Notes under the pieces: generated by a model
The model's input: the letters and a program-made list of their open reading frames with translations, nothing else
Database searches by the model: none
Told to the model about the DNA's origin: nothing
Program-made: the position numbers and the translations under genes
NCBI GenBank assembly: GCA_900088475.1
Contig: FLMG01001402.1
Location: 1 to 41,030 of the forward strand
Direction: 5' to 3'
Source: Hyphochytrium catenoides
Taxonomy: Eukaryota; Protista; Hyphochytriomycota
Length of the DNA stretch: 41,030 bases
Shown here: piece after piece, positions 21,263-38,799 of the stretch
How positions within the stretch are numbered: position 1 is the stretch's first letter
How the letters are laid out: each line of letters starts with the position of its first letter

Positions 21263-21886
21263 TCAGGATGAGATGGAAAGCCAGGGGTGCTGGGTTCTGA
21301 CCCTCCTTCGTTCTTCTTCTGAAAAGTCGTTGTCGACTCCAAACATTTGACAAATCGCATTTGGTGACCTTCCCGCTAGTAGTGTGGCCAGCTTAGCGCA
21401 CACTGCGTTGTTGAGATATGTGAACCCAATTGCTTCAGCTATGGCAGCAAGCTCTAGAAGCTCCTCTGCTTCCATATCAAGAAACTTCACCATCCAGGGG
21501 GACATAGTCTTTTCCAAATTAGGACTCTGTAGAGGCCTAATAGCGATCACTTGTTGGAGGGCAGGGCTTGGTGAATCCGGGGATGCCTCACACTCATAAA
21601 CAAGCCTTCCTTCTCGTAGAAATGCTAGCACTCTCCCTAGCATGCGGCTTGACATCAGAGGAACAGCAACCACCATTGCCTTTTGCTCCTCAAGTTTTGG
21701 GTCGCTCAAAATGGCATCCCCACGCCCTGTTTGCGCACGCGCAAGCTGCAGGAGTTCTGGCGCAGTGCACCCTAGCACCTTGCTGCCTTCTTGCAGTGTC
21801 GAAGCGAATCGTTGCCCGTCGTTAGCTACCAGTGTTAACACTATCTGGTACTGTTCACCTTTCAACTTCTGTCGCGTCTCCTGCAT
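21263..21886 (-). CDS. Divergent SKP1-like protein
   Basis: The N-terminal POZ-like part has LTLVANDGQRF and VPLMSSRMLGRVLAFL. The C-terminal Skp1 part reads WMVKFLDMEAEELLELAAIAEAIG...CAKLATLLAGRSPNAICQMFGVDNDFSEEE...HPW. The in-frame ATG is at 21886, but an upstream exon is possible (acceptor-like tract near 21924). Confidence 0.82.
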   Translation of the reverse strand: MQETRQKLKGEQYQIVLTLVANDGQRFASTLQEGSKVLGCTAPELLQLARAQTGRGDAILSDPKLEEQKAMVVAVPLMSSRMLGRVLAFLREGRLVYECEASPDSPSPALQQVIAIRPLQSPNLEKTMSPWMVKFLDMEAEELLELAAIAEAIGFTYLNNAVCAKLATLLAGRSPNAICQMFGVDNDFSEEERRRVRTQHPWLSISS

Positions 21887-24800
21887 GTTCAGATGTAAGC
21901 CCGTAGTCCCAATCACACTTGCCTAAGGGTAAAAAAGAGCTATGGCAAGGGCAAGTGAAGAGGCTTCTATTGCTTTGTCCCTGCTTTTGCAGGACGCTAA
22001 AAGTGCTGGGTAACAGACTTGAACTTGAAGGACTGGTGGCATAGAAGGTTCGCTCAAGTCAGGAAGTAACGACTGTAACTCTCCTTGTTAGCTGCTGGGG
22101 AGGGAAGGTAAGAGTTGAGATGATGGCTTGAGGGAGGACGAGGCTACACTACTACTGCTGCTGCTTCCCTTCTGCAATGGCCTCAAAGAAAGTGGGATCA
22201 TGTGTCCTCCAAGTAAGGAAAAAGAGGCACAGCAGTGATCAGCTATAGAAGAGTACCAGCAGAAAGAACAAGTGGTGGATCTTGAGATGTTCTCTCTTAA
22301 CCTCACTGGGAAGCAGACACAAGCCTCCTGCCTCTCTTTCTGGAGTCTTCTTTTGGTCTCTCTCCCTTCCTCCTCTTTCCCCAGGCCGATCACCTCTTCT
22401 TCTTCTCTCTCTGTGTGTCTGTCTCTTCACTCTCTTTGGCCCCCTGTCTGCCCCTCTTCTCCCTTCACAACTCTTCCTCCGTTGTCTGCCGCTTAGTTAT
22501 ATTCGGCTGTTTCCGAGAATACGGTCCGTTACATTACATCAACAAGAGAGTAAGCGGCGGCGCTTCTTCGCTGTCGGAGAACTAGATCTCCTCTTCCCGT
22601 CACTGAGACGCAGCACCACACCATCATCATTGGCCTCCTCCGTCTCACTTCTTTGTGGTGCAGGAGAACAGGTGATGATGGTGTTCTTACTTGGTGATTC
22701 TCGATATAAATGGGTAAGCCCTCGTTCAACATTCACCAGACCACCTCGCTCGCGCGCCTCCCACCACCATATCATACCTTATCCAGGTCTTTTTGGGATA
22801 GAAGAGGCAGGAGGACTTTGTGGTGGAGATACGCAGGGGTGCAATAGCTTCTCTTCTTTTCTTTTGTGCCGGCATTATTAGTACGGAGCGACATACTAAG
22901 CAATCTAGTCTGGTAGAAAGAGAAGATGATGAGTGAAGTACGATGATATAATAAACGACTCATTGATAAGTGCTTGCCGTCATCGCGATTGGTGACCAGA
23001 TTCTTCTTTGATCGTCCTCCAACAAACATCCAGTTGACTCAGCATACAAAGTGAAAATCATTGCTCAATAGCAGGAGGAGGAGAGGAACGGAACTGATGG
23101 CCCAAGCAATGCATGTGATATCAGTTCCTAGTCGGAAGTCCCTTTGTATCAATAAGGAGGACTGCTCTTGTTGTAGCAATTGGCCCCCATCATTGAAACT
23201 CAACATTCAACTGCGAAGAGGAAGCCTCAGGTGCCAAAACGTCGACACGTGCTAAAGTTGCCGGCGCGCAAACCTACTACCTTGATAATCTCTATGGCCT
23301 TTCACAGGGCCTCGCATCAGTGCTGCTCGTTGTGCTTCCAATGGCAATAATATCTCTATCACTACCCAGCATCAATCCGCACTTCTCCCTGCCTGCCTGG
23401 ACTATCCTGGATTAACCCGCTTCTCTTAGAAGGGTTTTGAAAATGCTGCCTGTCATCACTAAGACAGAAGACATCATTCTACATAATTACGAGTCTATCT
23501 CGGTTCTCTTTCGCGCTACGTCCGTTGACAGATGGGTGGGATACGCAAGTCTCGCTCTTGCCTCTCCAATGTCCGAAAGAAATATGTCTGGGTAACGGAC
23601 TCAGCCGTTCGAGACCAGATGAGAGCTTAATATTACTATGGACTTCGAAGGGACCCAGGTCTTCTTCCCATAGAACCGCAAAACCGCACATTTTTTGCCA
23701 GCATGCTTGGAGCTCCATAAACAATGACCGCTCTCCTTCCCAGAGTGTAACCACCCATTCCCAAGAAAGCTGTCTTAGTACAAAGAAGGAGAGGGGACAA
23801 GAAGGGAGTGCTGAAGAGACCAGAATAATATGGTGCAAATCTGAAACAACAGCATTGGCTGTGTCAAGGTGCGAGGTTTGGATAGGTCGTCTCTTCTTCT
23901 GGAAGAGGGCTGAGCTACTATGAAGACTATATACTTGAAGGGCAGCCCTCCTTTCACTTCTTCCACGTCATCACTCCTAGGCATATTATGACTGGAAGGC
24001 ACGGAAGTCACACTCTCATCAGTGTAGCCCTTCAAGAGACTGGAGAACATTGAGTTGACCGAGACAAGTTTAGAACTAAAAGGCGGCACGCTGAAAGGAT
24101 AAGGAAACGGCAATCCAATGTGCAATGTGGTGTCTTCTGCGGCTTGTATAGAGGTAGAGACGAGAGGAGAGAGTGAGAAGACAGGGAAGAAGGGGTGAGG
24201 AACAATTATGAATTATGAGGAGTGGCAGAGAGGAGTAAGCAAAGGGTAGGAACTAGAGAGAATAGAGACGGAGAGAGAGAGACAAAGAGAAGGACAGCCA
24301 GAAAGAGAGCGCGCTGGAGAACAAGGGGATGAGGAAAAAAGGAAGTGCAAAATCTGAAACCCCCACTCCACATCACTTTGGGCGTTACAAAACATATATT
24401 CGGAATGATATAATAGTTTATGCAGCATGTCAAATATATCCCAAGTCTTAATTAAGGATCAGTACGTCTCGTTGGGCATGATGGTGGCCCCAGAGTCAGG
24501 AAGATGATGAACGGAGTCAGCCCGACGTCGATGCTTCTGCTGCTCGCCGCCTGGGCTGGGCTCTACCATACAACTCTCTTCCTCCACTCCGTCATCTCCT
24601 CCTCCTGCCCCTCCTCCTATTATGATGCCGTCTGTTTCTTCCTCGTCTTCTTGCCTTTTATTACCTTCTTGGGCATAATAATGATGATGTCCCGTGAGCT
24701 GCACAGCTAGCACCAAGTTTCATCAGCTTTGTTGCTGGTACCCTTGTTACACTTGCTTGAACGGCGCGTATCGCAATGTAATAATATGCTGATAGTCCAG

Positions 24801-25357
24801 TGATGGAGGTATTGGAGGAGGAGAAGTCCACTTGCCTGTTCTCTTCTCCCGCATCATAGACTTTCCCCTGACCCATCTCGGCCTCCTAGGTCACTCCCAA
24901 ATGTTAAAGAGGAGGTCTCGTCTTCGTCTTCTGTCACCGGTACTACTTGGCCCTCTATCCCTTACTACACCGACCCTCCTCGGCCCATGTCTTGGAGCAA
25001 GGTAAGGCCCTTATAGCTGCACTGCTGGGTCGAAGATTCACACCTCCTGCTAATATTTAGCTGGGAATAGCGGGGCATGGCTCAAACTTCTTGAAGACCA
25101 TTTGGGAGTAACCTTGTGGAGAAGTATCAATCAATGGGGTCTAGATAATTTCCGCAACTACAAAGTCTTATTCCTTCAACGACGTACTCGGTACTAGAGA
25201 CTGTTAGTCCCCTTAGACAGTCTGCATCTGTCAGCTCCATCAGGTCAATCCTTTAGCTCAGCCAGCTGCCCACGGTACGGCGGCGTAGGGTCTGACGTTC
25301 TTTCACCTATTAAAAGTTGAAGAGCATTAACAGGTGTTGCTGGAGAAGTCATCGACG

Positions 25358-28300
25358 ATGGCGGGGCTAACATCGCGCCCTCTTGGCCGGTTTGCCTACG
25401 GTCTCTTGTTCGCAATAACTCTGATTATTGTCCCTTGTGTCTTCAAGGCAGCCCTGGCAGCCGACACAGCTGCTGTGCCCCCGTTGATCGATCCTGACCT
25501 CTTAAAAGTCCAGTATCCAGATCTTACGGTTGCATCAGGCGTCGGGAGCTCCAGTTCCATGGCCATGATGAGGGATCTGACCTTTATCTACAGAACAGCT
25601 AAGCCTGGAGTCTTCATCAACCATGTGACTGACAGGCAGCTTCGAAGCCCCAGCACGAGAAGTGAATACCTTAACGGAAATGTGGACTATCTGCTCTCCA
25701 TCACGCTGCTCTCCTCTTCAGATATGGCCAAGGTTAGTGACACGCAGAACTATCCTCTAGTCGTGTCCGGCCTGGTGCCGATGGTCAACCTTCCTGAGCT
25801 CGATGATAACGAGGACATCTGGCTGGACAGGAAAAATATGCTAGAAATCTTTAACGGCACCCTGTCAAAGTGGAACGACCCTTCTATCCTCCAAACCAAC
25901 TTGAAAAACCCCGCATACGCCAAAATCGCAGCGTTGAACAAGAAGATAGAGGTCATTGTACGAGCGGACTCCTCCTCGACCACCAATGTCTTTATCAGGA
26001 CACTAATCTCTTTTTCCAACAACACCTTGTCATTTGCGGACAGTGTCTCTCTGTCCAAGTTTCCAATGCCTGACTCCAACTACATCGATCCAGACACAGG
26101 CAAGACCCGTATCCGCCGGTATATCGAGACAGAAGCTTGTCTAGCAGCCCTTCAGACCACTCCTTATGGCATCTCGTACATGCTTTGGACTACCGCCACC
26201 GCCAGCACCTCTAAGGACACCTCAAGGCGTTACAGAGTGAAAGTGGTGCCTTTAATCAATAAGTTCGGTAACCTGGTCCGCCCCACGGTGGAGACCATAC
26301 AGTCAGCGATGGTGGAGAAGTCACAGGCTCTTCTCTCCCCAATCACGAAAGACGTGACTCTCTTCGATGGTGCCAGCCCTGAGTCTTGGCCCATTGCCTA
26401 TATCAACTACTTACTCATCAGGAAAGACTTCGTGCGACCAAAGACAAACTGCGATACCCGTGCCGCCACAGCTGAATTCTTCCATTGGTTCTACACCTCC
26501 TCCTCGGGCACACCAATCGCTGAAAGGTATAACTATCTGATGCTGCCAGAATCTGTGCGACTGAAGCTCGGAGGGTACGTGCAGCAGAATACACTGTGCT
26601 CTGGTGGGAAACCTGCATTTTTCTTTGGGATCAATGGTAAGGGCCCAGAAGAAGTTAACGCTGTACTGCCAGTCTACACAGCCATGTACTCTATCAAGGA
26701 TCCAGCTGCCGCGATTGGCCTTGTCGCTGGTTGGGATGGGGAGAGTGTGGATGCGCTCAGTCAAGTTGCCAATGGCCTAATTCCCTTTGCCGTGCTGCCC
26801 TCAAGCGAAGTCACCAGGGCTTCTGAATCACTGCCCGAAAATGAGAGGGAGCTACTAACTTCAGGACCCATCTTCCTTGCTTCACTGGGGGTTTTCTATA
26901 ACCATCCGGACTTTGATGGGACTAACGAGACGTCTCTTCTTACACTTTCCATGGACACCTTGGCTGGCATACTCTCGGGGTCGATCACGAAGTGGAATGA
27001 TATATCGCTGAGGCGTCTAAACTCTAATGAAGCGGGAGACAAGTTGTCCAAAGCGGAAACGATCAAGATTATTCTCTACGACTCACCCGTGAGATGGGAA
27101 TACACCGCACTCTATCATGCCCTTGCCCGATTCCCAAGCGTCCAAGCTAAGATTTTCCAGCAGTCAACCCTACCCGGAGGGGCACCAAGTCTTCATCTTC
27201 CATCCGAGGTGGAGGCTTACACAGCCGCGTCAGATTCGAACACCCTAGAGTCGCTAATTCTTCAGAACCCTTACTCCATTGGTCTCAAGTTCAGAGTCGC
27301 CAAGCGGGATCCTTTCGTCCCTATAGCCCGGATGATCAGCTCTTCTAGCTCTGTTATCTCGTCCGCGTCCAGCTTGAAGGCTCTCGTGGGAAGCCCATCG
27401 CAGTTAATGGCCTGTGGCCACGACATTCGCATGCCTGTTGAGAAGCCAGCTTCTTTGCTCCACGATGTTAATCTTTCCAGGATTGTGTCCCCCTTCTCCG
27501 CCAGCAATGAGACAGACTGTTGGCCCTTAACTGACAGCTTGTCAGTGGTTCTCAGACGCCAATACGCCGCCGCAACTTGTAGGTCTGTCGCCCATCCGCT
27601 CTTAGGCTTCTGGGGCTGGTATACTGATCCTTCTACTTCGGGAGAAGTGTTTGAGCGCTACGGTCTGTCCTCTCTTTCTGAGGATGTGAAAGCGTACACG
27701 AGGGAGATAATCCTCAGGTCCATCACCTGCGCTAACTCTCCAAACGTCATCTTGAACACGGGTACCTGCATCCCAGCCCATATCAAGGCAAGCGTGGCGC
27801 CGCAGTGTGTACAAGACGGCCCGGTGACCGTCCCTGTACACTTTGAATGGATTGAACCTAAGACTTGTGATGGCGGGCAAACCCTACTCCCGGACCACTC
27901 CATTTGGTGCGACTATTTACCAGGGGGATCAGATTGGGGCCTGGCAATGAAAGCCCACCTCGGTATCTCCCTGAGCTTTGGCGTTGCGCTCGCCACGAGT
28001 GTTATCTTCCTCCGCCATCATCCAGCCATCTTGCTCGCCAACTATACCCTTATGCTTACAATCCTTACCTTCGGCACCCTAAGAATGCTTGCGAGTATCG
28101 GCGTCCTCCTTCGTCCAACGAACCTTAGCTGCGGCTTCTCTTCTTGGCTGGATGACCTGTTTCTCAATGGACTCCTAGACCTTCTCATCGTGCCGACAAT
28201 GTTACAGTGGATTGGTTTCCGAAGCGGAAGATCTGTTCCTCGGGGCCAAGCGATTGTACTTGCTGCTCTGATACCTCTTGGTCTGTTTCTGATAATAACC

Positions 28301-29365
28301 ACCGCCCTAGTAGCGACGAGATCTCCCAGGATAAGGTCTGATCGCGCAGTGACGGTGATGCGTGACTGGACTGCCATGGTGCCGTACTGCGAGCCTACAA
28401 CCGGCTACGGGCTCTACGTGAGCACCTGGACCATCCTAACAGCCACCGTTGGAATTGTAGGCAGTTTCTACTCCTGGAGAGACCAAAAGCACATTCCAAA
28501 TGGGCGCATATCCATTGTCGCACTTTTGATCCTCTTCTCCTTTGAGATAGCGAAGAGAGCGGTGCAAAATAGTGTTGGGAAGCTTGGCGACGCCGCTGTG
28601 GTTCCGGAAGCTGTGGGAGCTCATCTTTTGCTTCTCGGTACCTCCCTCTGTCTATTTACGTTAGTCGCTCCAAAGCTCTACACAGCGCTCACGGTATCCA
28701 AGAGTGAGCGACGGTTCCAAGCGCTGTAAGTCTCCGAAAGCTTTTGCTGCATCTTCTCTTCCATTATCATCTATTATCATTTCTTTATTACAGAGGCTAG
28801 CCTTCGTCGCTCTCCCTACTTATTTATCGCTCTCTCCTCTATGCCCCATCGACTAACCAGACACTCTCTCTTCTTATACGTCTGTTTATGCAGAGACACC
28901 TCATCTTTGACGAAGATAAACTCCACGGAAGCTCTCCTCAACGCACTTCACGGAAATAGCATGGTTCGGTCCAAGTTCCGTGACTACCTCCAGGCCGAGC
29001 ACGCTGAGGAGAATCTGATGTTCTTGGAGATGGCAGATCGTCTAGAAGAAACGTCTGATCCTAGGAGGCGACTCACTTTATTCCAAGATATCCTCGATGA
29101 GTATATCCGACTGGGATCTCCATACGAAGTAAATGTCTCGGATGCTCTGCGAAAGGAACTTATGATGTTCGAAGAAGCAACCTCTGTGGATTCGAAGGTG
29201 CTTAGTGCCACGAAGCAGCAAGTTCTCAGACTTCTGCTAGATTCGTTCATGAGATTCAGCAGAGCTGAGGCACTAGCTTCAATGTCAGCAAGAAGGAAGA
29301 CCCTCTCGAGCTCCCAGGTGGCAGCATTGATGCAGGAGATTGGAGGGGACAAGAAGAAGCCTTAA
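25358..29365 (+). CDS. Receptor: signal peptide, two PstS-like phosphate-binding-protein domains, Cys-rich stalk, class-C-like 7TM and RGS domain (two exons, about 1279 aa)
   Basis: Exon 1 is 25358-28725 and exon 2 is 28894-29365. The intron runs 28726 GTAAGT...GACTAAC...TGCAG 28893 and is phase 2 at both ends; the total of 3840 nt is 1280 codons. PstS motifs are IFNGTLSKWNDPSI, VIVRADSSSTT and WPIAYINY, repeated as ILSGSITKWND and WPLT. Seven hydrophobic helices end in APKLY. RGS motifs are FRDYLQAEHAEENLMF, YIRLGSPYEVNVS and LDSFMRF. Confidence 0.9.
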
Positions 29366-31520: not shown

Positions 31521-33098
31521 ATGAAGATGAGCAAAGCAATGTTGAGAGCACTGCAAGTGTTAGCGATATTCGCGGCCCTCACTAAAGATGGCGTCAGTGC
31601 AGATTGTCGGCTTACAGCTCCAAGCACAGCTAAGGCGACATATCATTCATACAGCAAGACTGATCCCGACACTACGACTGCTTGTCAACTTCAGTTCCCG
31701 CAAGGTCCAGGACCGCTGATGGTTACGGCAGTCGATGCCACTCTTTTCAAAAGAGGCTTGTCTTGCGGTGATTGCTTGAAAGTGACCAACACACTGCCCG
31801 GAGGCTCCTCAGCCATCGTACAAGTAGTTGATCTTAAGGGAGCAGCAGGACTAGATATGTCGCCGGACTCTTTCAGGGCCATCGCGGGCGCCTCCAACCT
31901 CATTGACTTGGGCTCTGCTGATGTTACATTCTACAAAGTCCCTTGCACTTCCCTGCTGAGCTCACCCAACATCAAGTACAGGTTCAAGGCAGGAAGTGAT
32001 GGAAATCCTTACCTTGGATTCATGGTAGTTGACCATTTAGTACCCATGAAGAGCGTAGCGATCGCACCTAGCAAAGATGGACCCTTCACTTCTTGTTCTA
32101 TGGATGCCAACAATTGGTGGATTTGCTCCAACCATGCAAAACTCAACATTGGAGGTTACGGACCTATCTTTCACGTCAAAATGGAGTCAACCGAGAACAC
32201 TGTTATCTACGATGCCATTCATGAGCTGGACGGGTCCAATGAGGCTCGTGTTTTCTCTTCTAGCGTCCAATTTCCTTCACCATCCAACTGTGGGGGTACC
32301 AAAGCTGAATACTCTCCTAGGGCAGTTCCTACACCGTCGCCGTCAAGCAAGCCAATACCTACCCAAGCAGCTCCAACAACTAATTCTACTTCGCGTTCGC
32401 ATAGAGACACTGACCACGACCTGGACAAACACGGGTCTGACGGTATGAAGAATGACAAATCTAGCTTGGAAATCAAAGAGAGAAACTCAACAGAAAGCTC
32501 TACCGCTGTTACTTCTACCGGAGAAAATAAGCCTTGTCTGGCCACTGGAGCCCTTGCTGGCAATAAAGACGCCGATGCATGGTGTGCCACAGTGGCTGGT
32601 GATGCTAGCGCCACAGCTTGCACCTGTGGTTCGGTACAAACAACGGAGAGTGCCGCCTCAGAGGTGACATGTACTGCCCTAAATGAATATTCCGACCAGG
32701 CCAGTGGATGGTGTAAACTGCAGTGCAGCACTGGTCTCTGTCCCCAGGATCTTTGCCGTTGCGAGACAGAACAGTCGTCACTGACGTCAGATGTCATGGG
32801 ATCAGAGGACGACGGGAGGAACAGTGATAAGCTAGAAAACTCGAACTCAAACGCAGCGACAAAGGCAGCTGATGGATCCTCTTCCGGTATTCCCACAGGA
32901 GGCATAGTAGTCATTGTCGTTGTTGCTGTGGGCATGGTTGTCGTTGCTGGGGCGCTGGCGGTCAGCCGCTTCCGAAAGCGCAACGAAGAGAGTGACGACG
33001 ACGCCCCAGATGTTTGTCAAGTGACCCCAACGGCTGGTGAGTTTCAAGGCCAATACGCCCGCTACCCTTCCCTAGACCACGCTTCTTATAGTATCTAG
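31521..33098 (+). CDS. Expansin-like protein (DPBB + CBM63) with Ser/Thr linker, two small Cys-rich modules and a C-terminal transmembrane anchor
   Basis: Signal peptide, then KATYHS, GLSCGDCLKV, VQVVDL...GLDMSPDSF (compare B. subtilis EXLX1 VTDL...ALDLSPNAF) and IKYRFKAGS...VVDHLVPMKSV. The TM helix GIVVIVVVAVGMVVVAGALAV is followed by RFRKR. Confidence 0.9.
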   Translation: MKMSKAMLRALQVLAIFAALTKDGVSADCRLTAPSTAKATYHSYSKTDPDTTTACQLQFPQGPGPLMVTAVDATLFKRGLSCGDCLKVTNTLPGGSSAIVQVVDLKGAAGLDMSPDSFRAIAGASNLIDLGSADVTFYKVPCTSLLSSPNIKYRFKAGSDGNPYLGFMVVDHLVPMKSVAIAPSKDGPFTSCSMDANNWWICSNHAKLNIGGYGPIFHVKMESTENTVIYDAIHELDGSNEARVFSSSVQFPSPSNCGGTKAEYSPRAVPTPSPSSKPIPTQAAPTTNSTSRSHRDTDHDLDKHGSDGMKNDKSSLEIKERNSTESSTAVTSTGENKPCLATGALAGNKDADAWCATVAGDASATACTCGSVQTTESAASEVTCTALNEYSDQASGWCKLQCSTGLCPQDLCRCETEQSSLTSDVMGSEDDGRNSDKLENSNSNAATKAADGSSSGIPTGGIVVIVVVAVGMVVVAGALAVSRFRKRNEESDDDAPDVCQVTPTAGEFQGQYARYPSLDHASYSI

Positions 33099-33765: not shown

Positions 33766-34056
33766 GCCGTTGCGCTCTTACATTGGAGGGACGGGGGTCC
33801 AAAGGAAGAAGAGACAAGGGAGAGCAAGGCTAGGTCACCATTTTCCCAGTGCCTGCCACTTTGCTGCCAGTATCTTGTCATTCTTACTTGTGCTGAAGCG
33901 TTGTGAAGACTTGGTACCCCTAACAGAAACGTTCTTCCCTTGAAGCAGTATATGTTCAGCTTCAGATTCAGAGATTGATGCTCTGCCGGGTATCCCTTGC
34001 TGATAGCGCTTGTTCATTCTCTCAGATCTTACTTGCTTCTCAACCATCGTCTGACA

Positions 34057-35530
34057 ATGGCGAGCCTAGGGATGCAGGCTGCGGCCGAACTGATCGGTAC
34101 ATGGTGGATTCTTGCTGTAGGCAATTCCCTTATCGCCAACGAAGTTCTAGCCAGCACAAAGGGAAATAAGATGGGCTTTGGATTCATTGCTCTCTACTTT
34201 GGCTTAGCTTTCTTCTTGCCACTGATATGCTTCAGCGATGTTAGCGCCACATTCAATCCTGCCTCAGCGATCTTCAAGTGGGTACTAGGACGGATCTCAA
34301 CCTCTCAGTTCTTTGTCTTCTGTGCTATGGAGCTTGCCGGTGCATTCTTAGGAGGCGTCACCGCTTGGCTCTATCACATTGGCCACTTTAACCTGAAGCC
34401 TAAGCCACCCCTCAGCCCGCATTGGACTGATGCTTTTCTAAGACCAATGGAGAGACGAGAAGAGACTGCGGCCACGTACACTTCCTTTGCTGGTATACCG
34501 TTTCCGGAGAGATTGCGCTTTCGCAAGGCTACAAGCGCAGACGAGGAGTTACAACGCAATCGTGCAGCCACTAGCCCCAGGGCTCCAGGTTCCCAGGATC
34601 TGGATACAAGCGCTGTGGCCACGAACAGCAGGGCTGAGACAAAGAAGGTGCAATCCCTAGCGCAGGAGATCACAAAGCCAAAGCGCAAGTATGGGATGAC
34701 TGACAGTGACTTAATGGAAGGACTACATGACGCTTATGAGACGCTGTCGGCAGAGGACTGGGCCTACACAGCGAACGTCATTGCTGATCAGTCGTCCAAA
34801 CTTAGTGTCTTTGCAACGCGGCCAGCAATATTTAACTGGTGGCAGAACCTACTGACAGAGACACTGGGAACAATGCTACTGATCTGGGGTGCCTTCACTT
34901 TAGAAGATGTCGTCGAGCTACTTCCAGTGGAGTTCAGACCTCTCTACCTCAAAGCTATATTCCCATTCTACCTTTCCCTGTATGTCGTCGCTTGCGTTGG
35001 TGCCCTGGGCGGACCGACGGTAGGTGGTGCGGTCGCTGGCTTAAACAAGTGTACTTTTCCTCAAATTTGTTAAGATTTATAGTGCGAATGAAAGCGCAGC
35101 GTATTGCTCCGTTCGTGTCTCTTCAATCAACCTTTCTCCCCCCTTCTTAGCTTTCACTATTCTTTCAGATTAACCTGCTTTCCCTCTTGCAACATCAACT
35201 GATTAACTAACTCTCACCACTCTCCATGCTGCGTGCACCTGGACGTGTCACTCCACGCCTACTCTGTCCACAGGGCTATGCAGCCAACCCAGGTATGCTC
35301 AGTGGTGTACGGAATGCGGTCATCGCGGGGGTGCTAACTGACCTGCCTGTTTTGTCTTTTCAGCAAGAGATCTAGGTCCTAGGCTAGCTCATTGGATCTT
35401 GCCCATCCCCAACAAGGGCTCATCCGAGTGGCACTACGCGTGGATTCCTATCGTAGGACCATTTCTGGGAGGTCTACTAGCAGCTGCACTCTATGAAGGC
35501 ACTTCAAGGGTGATGCTGACGAATAAGTAG
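34057..35530 (+). CDS. Aquaglyceroporin (MIP family, GlpF type) with an expanded loop C
   Basis: Exons are 34057-35019, 35274-35292 and 35364-35530. Motifs are AELIGT, the first NPA (TFNPAS), [13 protein letters not shown] and spliced [43 protein letters not shown]. The Asp in NPARD marks glycerol facilitators. Confidence 0.95.
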
Positions 35531-35734: not shown

Positions 35735-37788
35735 TCATACTCTAGTACCCTTGAGTCCGCGCTTGGGATAAGCTCTGGCCCTATCAGAACGAACGACACC
35801 AAGTTCGTCATCTTGTTGCAAGTCCAATTCATCATGACCAAGGTCAGCACCTACATCGGGGGGTGGGATCTCTAAAGCCAACAGCTCTTGGTCCGTGAAC
35901 CAAATGCCGCCAGAGTCCATAACGCTAGGGTTCTCAATGCGATGATACTGGAATACGCCGACTAGCTTAGAGGCTCTTTCGCTCTTCAGTAAATGACTCA
36001 CAGGAGTTCCGGTCACTGACTCCAAAAACCCAAAGGCCTGGGATCGCTTTTCTGATGATAGGGAATGCGATCGCGGCGAAGCTGAAGGCTTCATCGCCAT
36101 CAGCCTGTTCACCAGCTCCAAGAGCTTTCGAGGGGCATCTCCAGCAAAGGAATTCCACCACGCATTGGCATCAGTCTTTTCGGCGACATCCCAAAGAATT
36201 TCGCCTGCAAACCTGCCCGCGCGGCCCCTGAAGTTGATGACCTCCGCACAAATGTCCGCGGTCTCGCCCTCTGTGGCGTTATCTGCTGCAACTTGGTCCT
36301 TAAGGAACTTCAATGTCTCTGCATATTCTTCATTGGACAAAGCTGACCCTGCAAACCTAGGGTCGAGGAGGTATGCGAGCTGCATCACTGGGTGTCTGAT
36401 CCTTCCCCAGTATGAATTCAGCTTCTCGTGGATGAAGGCCTTAAGTTTGGGCGTGAAGTCTTTGCATGGCCCATCAGGACTAAAGTAATAGTTGAGCTCT
36501 GTGAAGACGTGGAATACTTGCGAAACCGATGCGGAATCAGACTGAAGGCTGATTATATGTTGGCCAAGGACCTCAAGGACCCGATTCTGCGAATCCACCA
36601 TGCTCCAGAACTCCTCGTCCATTGTAAGCGCTCGGATTTCATGTGGGAGAAGTCGGTTTTCATCAAGAAATGCTGATCCCGCAATGATACCGTCCCTGTT
36701 GCTCATTAGGGACTGGTACATCTGAGAATAGGAATGCCAGCTCGTCGTCATGGGCACGCTTGGTAGCGGAGTATCCTTGGTTCGGTCGGCGCGTTGGCGG
36801 AGAGTGGCCTTCGCTGCATCATTATCTCGGAAGAAGGAGGACACGCGTTTGGCTTTCTCAGCAGCGGTAGCGCAGTAGTCAGTCCCCAGAATGTCATCCT
36901 CGGTTAGGCGGATGAGGGCCGTAGAAGCGCAGCCATAGAAACTGATCCGCGGATATCGGGGTGCTAGGATCTTCCAAGCAGCCTTAATCTTGGGACCCAC
37001 GTCAGATACAACCGAGACAACTTTATGGCGTCCAACTTCTTCAATAATCTTGGCAATCCCTGCCGCTACCCCTTCTGCAGTTTGAAAATCTGGATTAGCT
37101 GCTATGGCTCTGTAAAATATTGGCTTAGGAGTCATGACCATAAAGTTAATGAGGCCTTCCTCGCCGTCGGCCGCCCTATATATCAAGGTAAGAAGAAGAG
37201 GCAAAATGTTAGCTAGAGGGAAGAAATGGGGAGGGACAGAGATGAGACTTACCAGGCGTCTGCTGTGACGGTCACCGCCTTCGCCTGAGAGATAAGGCTT
37301 GTAGTCTTTTCTCTGATAAATGCTGATTCCTTATCCAGCAATACGTCAGCTACCTGCTCCCGGCTTGGCACCGGAGCGTGAGGGTTGAGAGATTTTATCA
37401 TCTTAACAAACAATGGGTGCTCCACCACTGAGAAGGGAATGCCGGTTCCATATATCATACGCGCGATGGCAAGACTGACATCTTCACTGCCTCGCTTGTC
37501 TAACGCATAGCCCGCCTTGCGCTTGCCGCCTATTAGCTGCTTCGACTTACGATCATCGTCAAACTCACCGCTACCTGGCTTGCCATAGTTCATCTTCTTC
37601 TTGCTGAACTGCTCTTGCGCGACGGCTGAAGGTGCATTGGTGCAGACTCTCATGTGGTCCGCGGCTCGAGTAGCATTGGCGAGGAGCTCTTTCCCGCAAT
37701 AAAGGCAGATAGCTCTACCTTTCTTCCCATCCATTGGGGGAGCTTCCATCTTGTAGTGCTTCCAGACATCACTTGGCAACCGTGGCAT
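35735..37788 (-). CDS. hAT-superfamily transposase-derived protein (BED finger, DUF659-like core, hATC dimerisation region), probably domesticated
   Basis: BED finger VWKHY...CLYC...HMRVC, then IARMIYGTGIPFSVVEHPLF, TADAW (across the 77-nt intron 37176-37252), VVSD, AYLLDPRF, AWWNSF and ERASKLV. The two-exon ORF is intact. Confidence 0.88.
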
Positions 37789-38799
37789 GGCTCCCAGAAG
37801 GTTGGATATAAGATCAGCCTCTGCCGGGACGTGCTGCAGGAGATCCACAGGGATGGACTTATCCTCTCTATCTAACACTTCCCCGGATGGTCAGCTATAA
37901 TAGAGGGATATCTTCCAGAGCTTCTGATTGCCCTTGAGGCACTCAAAATCCGTGGAACAGCAAGAGTCTGAAGTTTCCTTTTCAATTTGGCCCTGTCGAA
38001 ATGTTCCAGAGCAAGAAAGAGACGCGCCGATAATTCCCAGGAGCGCGGATTATTCCGTTGTGAGGGTGGATTGCCTTCCAATCGGGCGGCCTGTGAAACT
38101 TTCCTGTGACAGTTCCAGGGAGATTTTAGACTGCAGCAAGGTCATATCTAGTGTGAGGTAACACTAAACGAGAGCCAAGCCTGGTGTATACCAGCAAGGA
38201 TTTAAAATTGTAGCTTAACGTGCTGCTTCTCGGGAGGTTCATCTCTGAGTGTTTGATTTAGGCGAAAAGCCCAGGCCAGGAATTGTTCAAAGCATAGTCC
38301 TGTGGCCTTGTAACATCAAAATGGCCATGAGATTAGGGTTGCAGCCCGTTTCTCATTCAGGGAGGGAGGATAGTTGGGGGGCTAATGCCTGAAGACCTGT
38401 TGTTGCCATTAAATGTCAAAGCACTAGAAGAGGGGTTTGGGAAGAATTTTACGAGGTGTAGAATTGAATATTTAAATGCGGTTTCTTCCCTTCCAAATAC
38501 CTAATCCAAGCGTAATATAGCTGGTAAGTGACTAGCAATCGTTTCCTACTTTGCATTTTCGGGTGGGTGGGACGTCGAATGGTTGTGTGGCGATTCCAGG
38601 CAATTTGAAACAGGAACATTCAAAGGCTAAAACTTCGAAGCCGTCACTTTGGTTGCCGGAATTATTTCTCCAATTTTCGGTCGTTTCAAACTTGCAGGTA
38701 TCTTCCACGTTTGAATTTGTTGTGGGGATGAAGTCTCTTGTCTCTTGACTTGCCAGATCCATCATTCCATCTTTTTTGTTGTTGGTGTGCTAAAAATTG

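Follow-up and report, generated by a model that had tools for sequence, protein, structure and literature searches.

A predicted two-exon gene of Hyphochytrium catenoides encoding tandem PstS-like domains, a class C-type seven-transmembrane domain and an RGS domain

We analyzed a stretch of 41,030 nucleotides (nt) from Hyphochytrium catenoides (GenBank assembly GCA_900088475.1, contig FLMG01001402.1, positions 1 to 41,030), referred to below as the window, and focused on a locus on its forward strand where two open reading frames (ORFs) follow one another. The upstream ORF (25334..28729, +) spans 1131 amino acids (aa) from a GTG codon, or 1123 aa if translation starts at ATG 25358, and encodes two domains related to the bacterial phosphate-binding protein PstS followed by a seven-transmembrane (7TM) domain. 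The downstream ORF (28841..29365, +) spans 174 aa and carries an RGS domain. Read from sequence, the two are most likely parts of one two-exon gene which, through a predicted splice, encodes a single type I-oriented membrane receptor of ~1279 aa. The features of the locus are as follows.

25358..28725, +: exon 1, 1122 codons plus two bases, encoding the signal peptide, two PstS-like domains, Cys-rich stalk and 7TM (continuous ORF; Pfam/NCBIfam; AlphaFold2, AF2)
25358..25459, +: signal-peptide-like N-terminus, aa 1-34, hydrophobic core at aa 16-34 (Kyte-Doolittle peak of 2.43 at 16-34)
25526..26617, +: PstS-like domain 1, aa ~57-420 (phmmer, Foldseek and MAFFT mapping to Escherichia coli PstS)
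26630..27727, +: PstS-like domain 2, aa ~425-790, with a degenerate pocket and an alpha/beta pattern parallel to that of domain 1 in the model
27728..27922, +: Cys-rich stalk with Cys 791, 804, 817, 837 and 851 and short beta strands
27932..28693, +: class C-type 7TM, aa 859-1112 (7tm_3, AF2 helices, Foldseek, family alignment)
28726..28893, +: predicted intron with GTAAGT, ACTAAC, a CT-rich 3' half and CAG; only in-phase acceptors keep the frame open
28894..29365, +: exon 2, 157 codons including the split Leu codon, stop at 29363-29365, encoding linker, RGS and basic tail
28949..29263, +: RGS domain, exon-2 residues 19-123, about aa 1142-1246 (Pfam and alignments to PDB chains)

The predicted intron, 168 nt in length, starts with the donor GTAAGT at 28726, and direct reading of the sequence places the in-frame TAA of the first ORF (28727-29) within this donor. 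It ends with the acceptor TGCAG at 28893, has a perfect ACTAAC branch site at 28852-28857, 37 nt before 28893, and falls in a gap between the two ORFs whose 3' half is CT-rich. The junction divides a codon, with CT closing exon 1 and A opening exon 2 to give Leu, after which the frame runs directly into the RGS domain; the spliced product measures 1279 aa. The intron is located exactly between the parts coding for the 7TM and the RGS domain, helix 1 of the latter beginning no more than a few residues from this boundary. Enumeration of GT/AG pairs showed that, with the donor at 28726, acceptors at 28800, 28860 and 28893 each leave the RGS domain in frame, so that the fusion is independent of the exact acceptor used, while splicing to the CAG at 28793 brings in a stop two codons later and loses the RGS domain. 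The AG at 28859-60 is only ~4 nt past the branch A and the next is that at 28892-93, which is the expected acceptor because the preceding one lies too near the branch A.

A neighbouring gene in the window served as a control for these signals. In the aquaporin (MIP) gene (33979-35527, +), two introns verified by homology are needed to restore the second NPA motif, the junctions reading ...GGPT / GYAANP(A) / (A)RDLGPR and the spliced motif NPARDLGPR:

35020-35273, +: aquaporin intron, 254 nt, GTAGGT...CAG, with CTAAC ~63 nt before the acceptor
35293-35363, +: aquaporin intron, 71 nt, GTATGC...CAG, with CTAAC 26 nt before the CAG

The proposed 168-nt intron lies within the 71-254 nt size range of the aquaporin introns and its signals are of the same kinds. 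The splice joining the first ORF to the RGS ORF is therefore the most likely arrangement, a prediction that rests on the splice signals, on these two introns in the same window and on an uninterrupted ORF of the same domain order in another protein, P0059, described below. The Skp1-like ORF of the window was also considered as an intron control and rejected, being one divergent ORF. Between the 254-nt and 71-nt introns of the aquaporin gene lies a micro-exon of 19 nt (35274-35292) that encodes GYAANP.

The RGS domain was recognized by Pfam (PF00615) with 49.5 bits against a cut-off of 23.9 (E 6.5e-13, profile positions 6-110 of 117), and phmmer matched 20 RGS chains of the PDB at E<=0.01, including RGS5, RGS16, RGS2, RGS17, RGS8, RGS4 and GAIP. 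Contacts with G-alpha are kept: exon-2 residues E39/N40, N80, D116 and R120 correspond to E87/N88, N128, D163 and R167 of RGS4, with A37 in place of RGS4 S85. The segments AEENLMF, YEVNVS and DSFMRF align to SEENLEF, KEVNID and DSxxRF of RGS5, RGS16 and RGS2. A linker of roughly 30 aa separates the domain from the 7TM, and a basic tail follows it.

The 7TM domain matches 7tm_3, the family of class C receptors, with an E-value of 5e-8 over profile positions 9-251 of 251. An AF2 model of exon 1, computed from a 35-sequence alignment (mean predicted local distance difference test score, pLDDT, of 76.9), shows two lobed domains of alpha/beta type and a stalk rich in beta structure; seven long helices occupy aa 859-1112, and the second extracellular loop (ECL2) forms a beta-hairpin (strands 988-993/1008-1013). 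The seventh helix carries APKLY; the motif PKxY in this helix is a hallmark of class C receptors. Cys925 at the start of the third helix (TM3), Cys1011 in ECL2 and Pro1105 are almost invariant across the family alignment. Foldseek matched the model to the 7TM of the human calcium-sensing receptor CaSR (9axf_R, 3.0e-7; 9asb_Q, 3.3e-7). In the AlphaFold database the 7tm_3 protein A0A835ZKG5 superposed with an rmsd of 3.6 over aa 803-1111, A0A433Q4L3 aligned over aa 24-1111, and the matches included tandem-PstS and 7tm_3 proteins. The Atlas clusters nearest to the 7TM were all 7tm_3, made up of 7tm_3-like proteins of Zoopagomycota (0.92), and we treat these as leads only. With its N-terminus outside and seven helices, the protein would place the RGS domain in the cytosol.

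At the opposite end of the chain, a lone helix at aa 8-34 of the AF2 model is followed by a linker of low pLDDT, which is compatible with a signal peptide; this call derives from hydropathy and the model. The ectodomain matched Pfam PBP_like_2 in two stretches (5e-17), that is, a type II periplasmic binding protein (PBP) fold, and NCBIfam TIGR00975 (PstS) at 1.1e-36, scoring 126.5 bits against an equivalog cut-off of 205. Judged by the TIGR00975 score, it is a PstS homologue and not an equivalog. Domain 1 was matched to E. coli PstS structures by phmmer (2e-15), and the PstS fold was recovered by Foldseek with TM-scores (template modelling scores, normalized by target) of 0.84-0.87 to the crystal structures 5wnn, 2abh and 1ixi. 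Domain 2 had no sequence match among PDB sequences. The stalk gave a weak match to ELAPOR1_C (Pfam, E 0.11), for which the corresponding stalk of P0059 scores 3.4e-6. Pfam returned no ANF_receptor or NCD3G match, and the type I PBP Venus flytrap ectodomain of animal class C receptors was not encountered.

We mapped the phosphate pocket through MAFFT columns that aligned E. coli PstS with domains 1 and 2 of the receptor and of 34 family members:

T10 of E. coli PstS: S65 in domain 1, E431 in domain 2
F11: S66 in domain 1, E432 in domain 2
S38: S97 in domain 1 (a column less securely aligned than the other pocket columns), S463 in domain 2
D56: I115 in domain 1, S482 in domain 2
R135: R202 in domain 1, Y574 in domain 2
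D137: D204 in domain 1, S576 in domain 2
S139: S206 in domain 1, R579 in domain 2
G140: S207 in domain 1, W580 in domain 2
T141: T208 in domain 1, E581 in domain 2

Domain 1 thus keeps the equivalents of Arg135, Asp137, Ser139 and Thr141 and has Ser for Thr10, and only Asp56 is clearly lost. The pocket of domain 2 is lost, as in nearly all family members. Among the domain 1s of the family most keep all nine positions, D56 being kept in 23/35 and R135 in 28/35. Asp56 is the residue that confers specificity on PstS, and Phe11 and Gly140 contact phosphate via their backbone NH, so that their side chains matter less. The D56N variant of PstS was crystallized with phosphate, as the title of PDB entry 1ixi states, and loss of the Asp56 carboxylate therefore need not abolish binding, Ile being a larger change than Asn. 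These alignments make it plausible that a tetrahedral oxyanion is bound by domain 1, with altered specificity, and that domain 2 is a non-binding partner.

These results bear out most of what an earlier note, drawn up from the letters of this stretch, had described. The 1131-aa and 174-aa ORFs and the canonical, phase-matched 168-nt intron signals were found on reading the sequence at the positions it gave. The signal peptide, two PstS repeats and Cys-rich stalk are supported by hydropathy, Pfam, TIGR00975 and Foldseek; the seven helices are of class C type in their PKxY motif and their structural match to CaSR; and the RGS box with its EEN and the Asn of EVN was confirmed by Pfam and the PDB alignments. 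Profile searches recovered PBP_like_2, 7tm_3 (just under its cut-off) and RGS alike.

In order to place the receptor among its relatives, exon 1 was compared by exhaustive phmmer with 1.84 billion representative proteins, which gave 859 matches, 150 of them listed. Identities among these 150 ranged from 24 to 39%, the best-scoring being P0001 (3.4e-54, 28%); as no listed match exceeds 39% identity, the receptor and any close orthologue appear to be absent from that collection. The C-terminal 560 residues of the 73 listed matches of at least 950 aa were surveyed for output domains and carried 7tm_3 in 38 cases, guanylate/adenylate cyclase in 12, protein kinase in eight, glutaminase in two, and PDEase (P0040), PARP+WWE (P0003) and RGS (P0059) in one each. 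P0001 itself is a protein of 2386 aa with four PBP_like_2 stretches and a TRP-like channel region.

An RGS domain was found in one of the 50 PstS-7TM representatives among the matches listed, P0059, which also has a G-alpha. P0059 is a protein of 1608 aa encoded by one uninterrupted ORF (L001:53-4879) on the 5.1-kb Logan contig ERR6349783_97853, and its domains run in the order PBP_like_2 twice, Cys stalk, 7tm_3 (803-1010), RGS (1058-1174) and complete G-alpha (1223-1560). Its RGS domain, located by a motif regular expression and then by Pfam, starts 48 aa after 7tm_3 and keeps the contact motifs SEN and VNIS. The PstS-7TM-RGS order therefore recurs elsewhere. Searching the 150 listed representatives by phmmer with the RGS and 7TM pieces of the receptor gave no matches; the 7TM and RGS domains of P0059 are not significantly similar pairwise to those of the receptor, so the two fusions may have arisen independently, by convergence. 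Scans of JGI metagenomes with the receptor protein and with P0059 found no relatives, and a word-index protein search with the whole of exon 1, the 7TM piece and the alignment returned nothing useful, the index being insensitive for this receptor. An Atlas cluster of 7tm_3+PBP_like_2 proteins scores 0.95 to the receptor. Clusters of PBP_like_2+7tm_3 proteins are present in Chlorophyta, Discosea and Chytridiomycota, and a 7tm_3/RGS cluster of 83 members is present in Zoopagomycota proteomes, the latter again a lead only. A plausible origin of the receptor gene would be a shuffle between a PstS-class C and a 7TM-RGS family across the single intron. A continuation of the receptor gene into a G-alpha was considered and rejected, as tblastn of P0059 found no downstream G-alpha exon, and no G-alpha at all, in the window.

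Taken together, the architecture suggests that the protein is probably a ligand-regulated GTPase-accelerating receptor in one chain. Domain 1, the sole domain with a near-complete oxyanion pocket, would close as a type II clamshell on a small anionic ligand, which would be phosphate-like with specificity altered by the Ile at the Asp56 equivalent. Closure would be relayed via domain 2, acting as a transmission or pseudo-partner module, and the stalk to the 7TM bundle, where a change would make GTP-bound G-alpha at the membrane more or less accessible to the tethered RGS domain. The outcome, by analogy, would be a cis version of the role of AtRGS1 and of the trans arrangement of GPR158 and RGS7. 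The more specific proposal, a single-chain switch in which an oxyanion in the predictable PstS pocket controls the attached RGS domain via the class C 7TM, we offer only tentatively. The receptor-GAP function (GAP, GTPase-accelerating protein) first proposed for this locus is reasonable in view of the architecture and the RGS contacts. Its ligand, given as phosphate or a related compound, is less secure: domain 1 keeps most pocket residues, but Asp56 is replaced by Ile115 and the pocket of domain 2 is lost.

Several observations weigh against this interpretation. The 7tm_3 score, 33.3 bits, is just below the Pfam gathering cut-off of 33.5, and the 7TM of the receptor was not found at E<=1e-3 by a hidden Markov model (HMM) of the mainstream PstS-7tm_3 receptors, which was built from seven family 7TMs and detects 50 of the 150 listed exon 1 matches. 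The replacement of Asp56 by Ile, together with the degenerate domain 2, makes the identity of the ligand less certain. For the RGS piece, an AF2 model built from the single sequence was all-helical and poorly packed (pLDDT 61.6), and Foldseek of this low-confidence model gave RGS16, RGS8 and RGS4 as best matches with E ~0.04 and TM ~0.3; because the model is too poor, the RGS assignment rests on sequence profiles. Finally, a good pyrimidine tract lies before the CAG at 28793, and a product spliced there would lack the RGS domain.

Of the other explanations, the one that survives best, although we think it rather unlikely, is a bifunctional receptor whose liganded 7TM still activates G-alpha as a guanine nucleotide exchange factor while the tethered RGS domain shortens the life of GTP-bound G-alpha, so that signalling would be rapid, confined in space and self-terminating instead of being simply switched off. 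The class C hallmarks that are kept (PKxY, the TM3-ECL2 Cys pair and the ECL2 hairpin) and the match to G-protein-bound CaSR speak for such exchange activity, as does P0059, whose chain of 7tm_3, RGS and G-alpha hints at a receptor that works on its own G-alpha and carries its GAP within it. However, the 7TMs of both proteins are divergent, that of the receptor having no match to the family HMM and that of P0059 scoring only 3.5e-4 against it, which would fit a relaxed or altered coupling.

It is improbable that the locus makes two products, the receptor stopping at the TAA at 28727-29 or via 28793 and the RGS domain being a separate gene from ATG 28841 or an unexpressed remnant. This ATG is indeed in frame with the RGS domain, the CAG at 28793 has its pyrimidine-rich tract, and GTAAGT is not enriched in the window, with 8 and 6 copies per strand where ~10 are expected. 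Yet the stop and ATG 28841 are just 111 nt apart, while the next ORF of at least 200 aa on the same strand starts ~2 kb past the RGS stop, and the 18 extra residues gained by starting at this ATG are the translated polypyrimidine tract. No CTRAY branch motif precedes 28793, compared with the perfect ACTAAC before 28893; the intact contact residues of the RGS domain argue against a remnant; and P0059 and the Zoopagomycota cluster both have 7TM and RGS in a single chain. As a separate matter, alternative splicing could produce an RGS-less receptor isoform, either through the CAG at 28793 or by intron retention, which would bring the immediate stop at TAA 28727-29.

Least of all do we favour a ligand-independent, membrane-anchored GAP whose ectodomain has lost binding and serves RGS placement, adhesion or dimerization, a highly improbable reading to which the change of Asp56 to Ile and of Gly140 to Ser and the degenerate domain 2 lend some support, but against which stand the retained Arg135, Asp137, Ser139 and Thr141 of domain 1, with Ser at Ser38 by alignment and a conservative Ser for Thr10, the backbone nature of the Phe11 and Gly140 contacts, in which side chains are less important, and the 2.3-kb ectodomain that is still an open frame, arguing for function.

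The genes around the predicted GTPase-accelerating receptor are ordinary and unrelated, and encode Sua5, an S1/P1 nuclease, PH-domain proteins and Skp1-like, Barwin-like, MIP and DUF659 proteins. In the 217-aa ORF at 21263-21916 (-), the Skp1 dimerization domain was recognized C-terminally (3e-11) and the N-terminal POZ domain was not detected, marking it as a divergent Skp1-like protein. The 525-aa ORF at 31521-33098 (+) has a weak Barwin-family match over aa 80-142 (2.4e-4, at the gathering threshold). The 489-aa ORF at 35738-37204 (-) matches DUF659 (3e-13), with a 209-aa ORF (37252-37878) immediately upstream on the same strand.

To our knowledge, how 7TM-RGS proteins sense has not been resolved, the glucose response of AtRGS1 being described without a defined binding site. 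A PstS-type clamshell on a 7TM-RGS protein gives a pocket of known chemistry, which makes ligand candidates directly testable, and, if the proposed switch is true, this would be the first 7TM-RGS receptor with a ligand site readable from sequence. The receptor would also be the cis-fused equivalent of the pair GPR158 and RGS7 in mammals. The eukaryotic PstS ectodomain emerges as a portable sensor whose outputs include 7TM, cyclase, kinase, PDE, PARP and now RGS. Together with P0059, the proposal, if true, would mean that protists have repeatedly joined a receptor, its GAP and even the G-alpha in a single polypeptide behind bacterial-type solute-binding domains. Its value is tempered by both halves being already catalogued and by the function being predicted only.

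The two halves have indeed been reported before. Receptors that join a class C 7TM to a type II PBP ectodomain, including PBP_like_2 ones, were described in Spizellomyces punctatus SPPG_06488 in 2012 (PMC3251606), and 7tm3 proteins with solute-binding (SBP/PBP) domains in Plasmodiophora brassicae in 2016 (PMC4815078); the earlier note had set the type I PBP usual in class C receptors against the type II fold of PstS, a pairing that was thus already in print. Likewise, 7TM-RGS proteins have been catalogued in many bikonts, chytrids, filastereans and ichthyosporeans (PMC3971589). Arabidopsis AtRGS1 is a 7TM-RGS receptor-GAP (PMC3386157), and the 7TM proteins RGS1-4 of Naegleria fowleri have EGF, lectin and GPS modules in their ectodomains and demonstrated GAP activity, with unknown ligands (PMC9283941). 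The lack of a large ectodomain is thus not general among 7TM-RGS proteins, as the Naegleria members have one, though not of a solute-binding fold. GPR158, a class C receptor that has no Venus flytrap, terminates G-alpha signalling through RGS7 (PMC8611064). In our literature search, outside which lay Anantharaman et al. 2011 (Gene) and the supplements of de Mendoza et al. 2014, we found no published combination of PstS/PBP_like_2, class C/7tm_3 and RGS. The triple fusion appears to be rare and undescribed, and the suggestion that the complete architecture had not been characterized stands to that extent, but its PstS-7TM and 7TM-RGS halves are known and the whole recurs in P0059.

Compared with bacterial PstS (1ixh/2abh), domain 1 has the same fold (TM 0.85-0.87) and keeps the Arg135-Asp137 pair and the Ser139/Thr141 loop. 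In contrast to the bacterial protein, a periplasmic partner of PstCAB, the PstS-like part here occurs twice, is fused into a receptor as its ectodomain and has Asp56 changed to Ile. The receptor shares with the PBP_like_2+7tm_3 family a tandem PstS-type ectodomain, a Cys-containing stalk and a class C-type 7TM, in that order, as well as the location of the pocket in domain 1 and the degenerate domain 2. It differs in that the published members have short or unassigned C-terminal tails, none with an RGS domain, in a 7TM too divergent for the family HMM, and in the Ile at a position that is Asp in 23/35. P0059 has the same order of PBP_like_2 twice, Cys stalk, 7tm_3 and RGS and a similarly short 7TM-RGS linker, but continues into a complete G-alpha, with none downstream of the receptor in the window.

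On the output side, the receptor resembles GPR158/GPR179, orphan receptors that scaffold RGS7-Gbeta5: it has a class C 7TM but no type I Venus flytrap, and its proposed output is RGS-mediated termination of G-alpha signalling. Unlike GPR158, which has a Cache-like ectodomain and works with a separate RGS7-Gbeta5 in trans, it has a PstS-like ectodomain and its RGS is fused; the resemblance is functional, homology being shown no further than the 7tm_3 fold. With AtRGS1 and the Naegleria 7TM-RGS proteins it shares seven helices followed by a cytosolic RGS domain, in what is predicted to be one chain, and the canonical G-alpha contacts; with those of Naegleria it also shares a large ectodomain. 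Whereas AtRGS1 has no ectodomain and those of Naegleria are adhesion-like, the H. catenoides receptor combines a class C-type 7TM with a solute-binding fold that has a recognizable small-ligand pocket.

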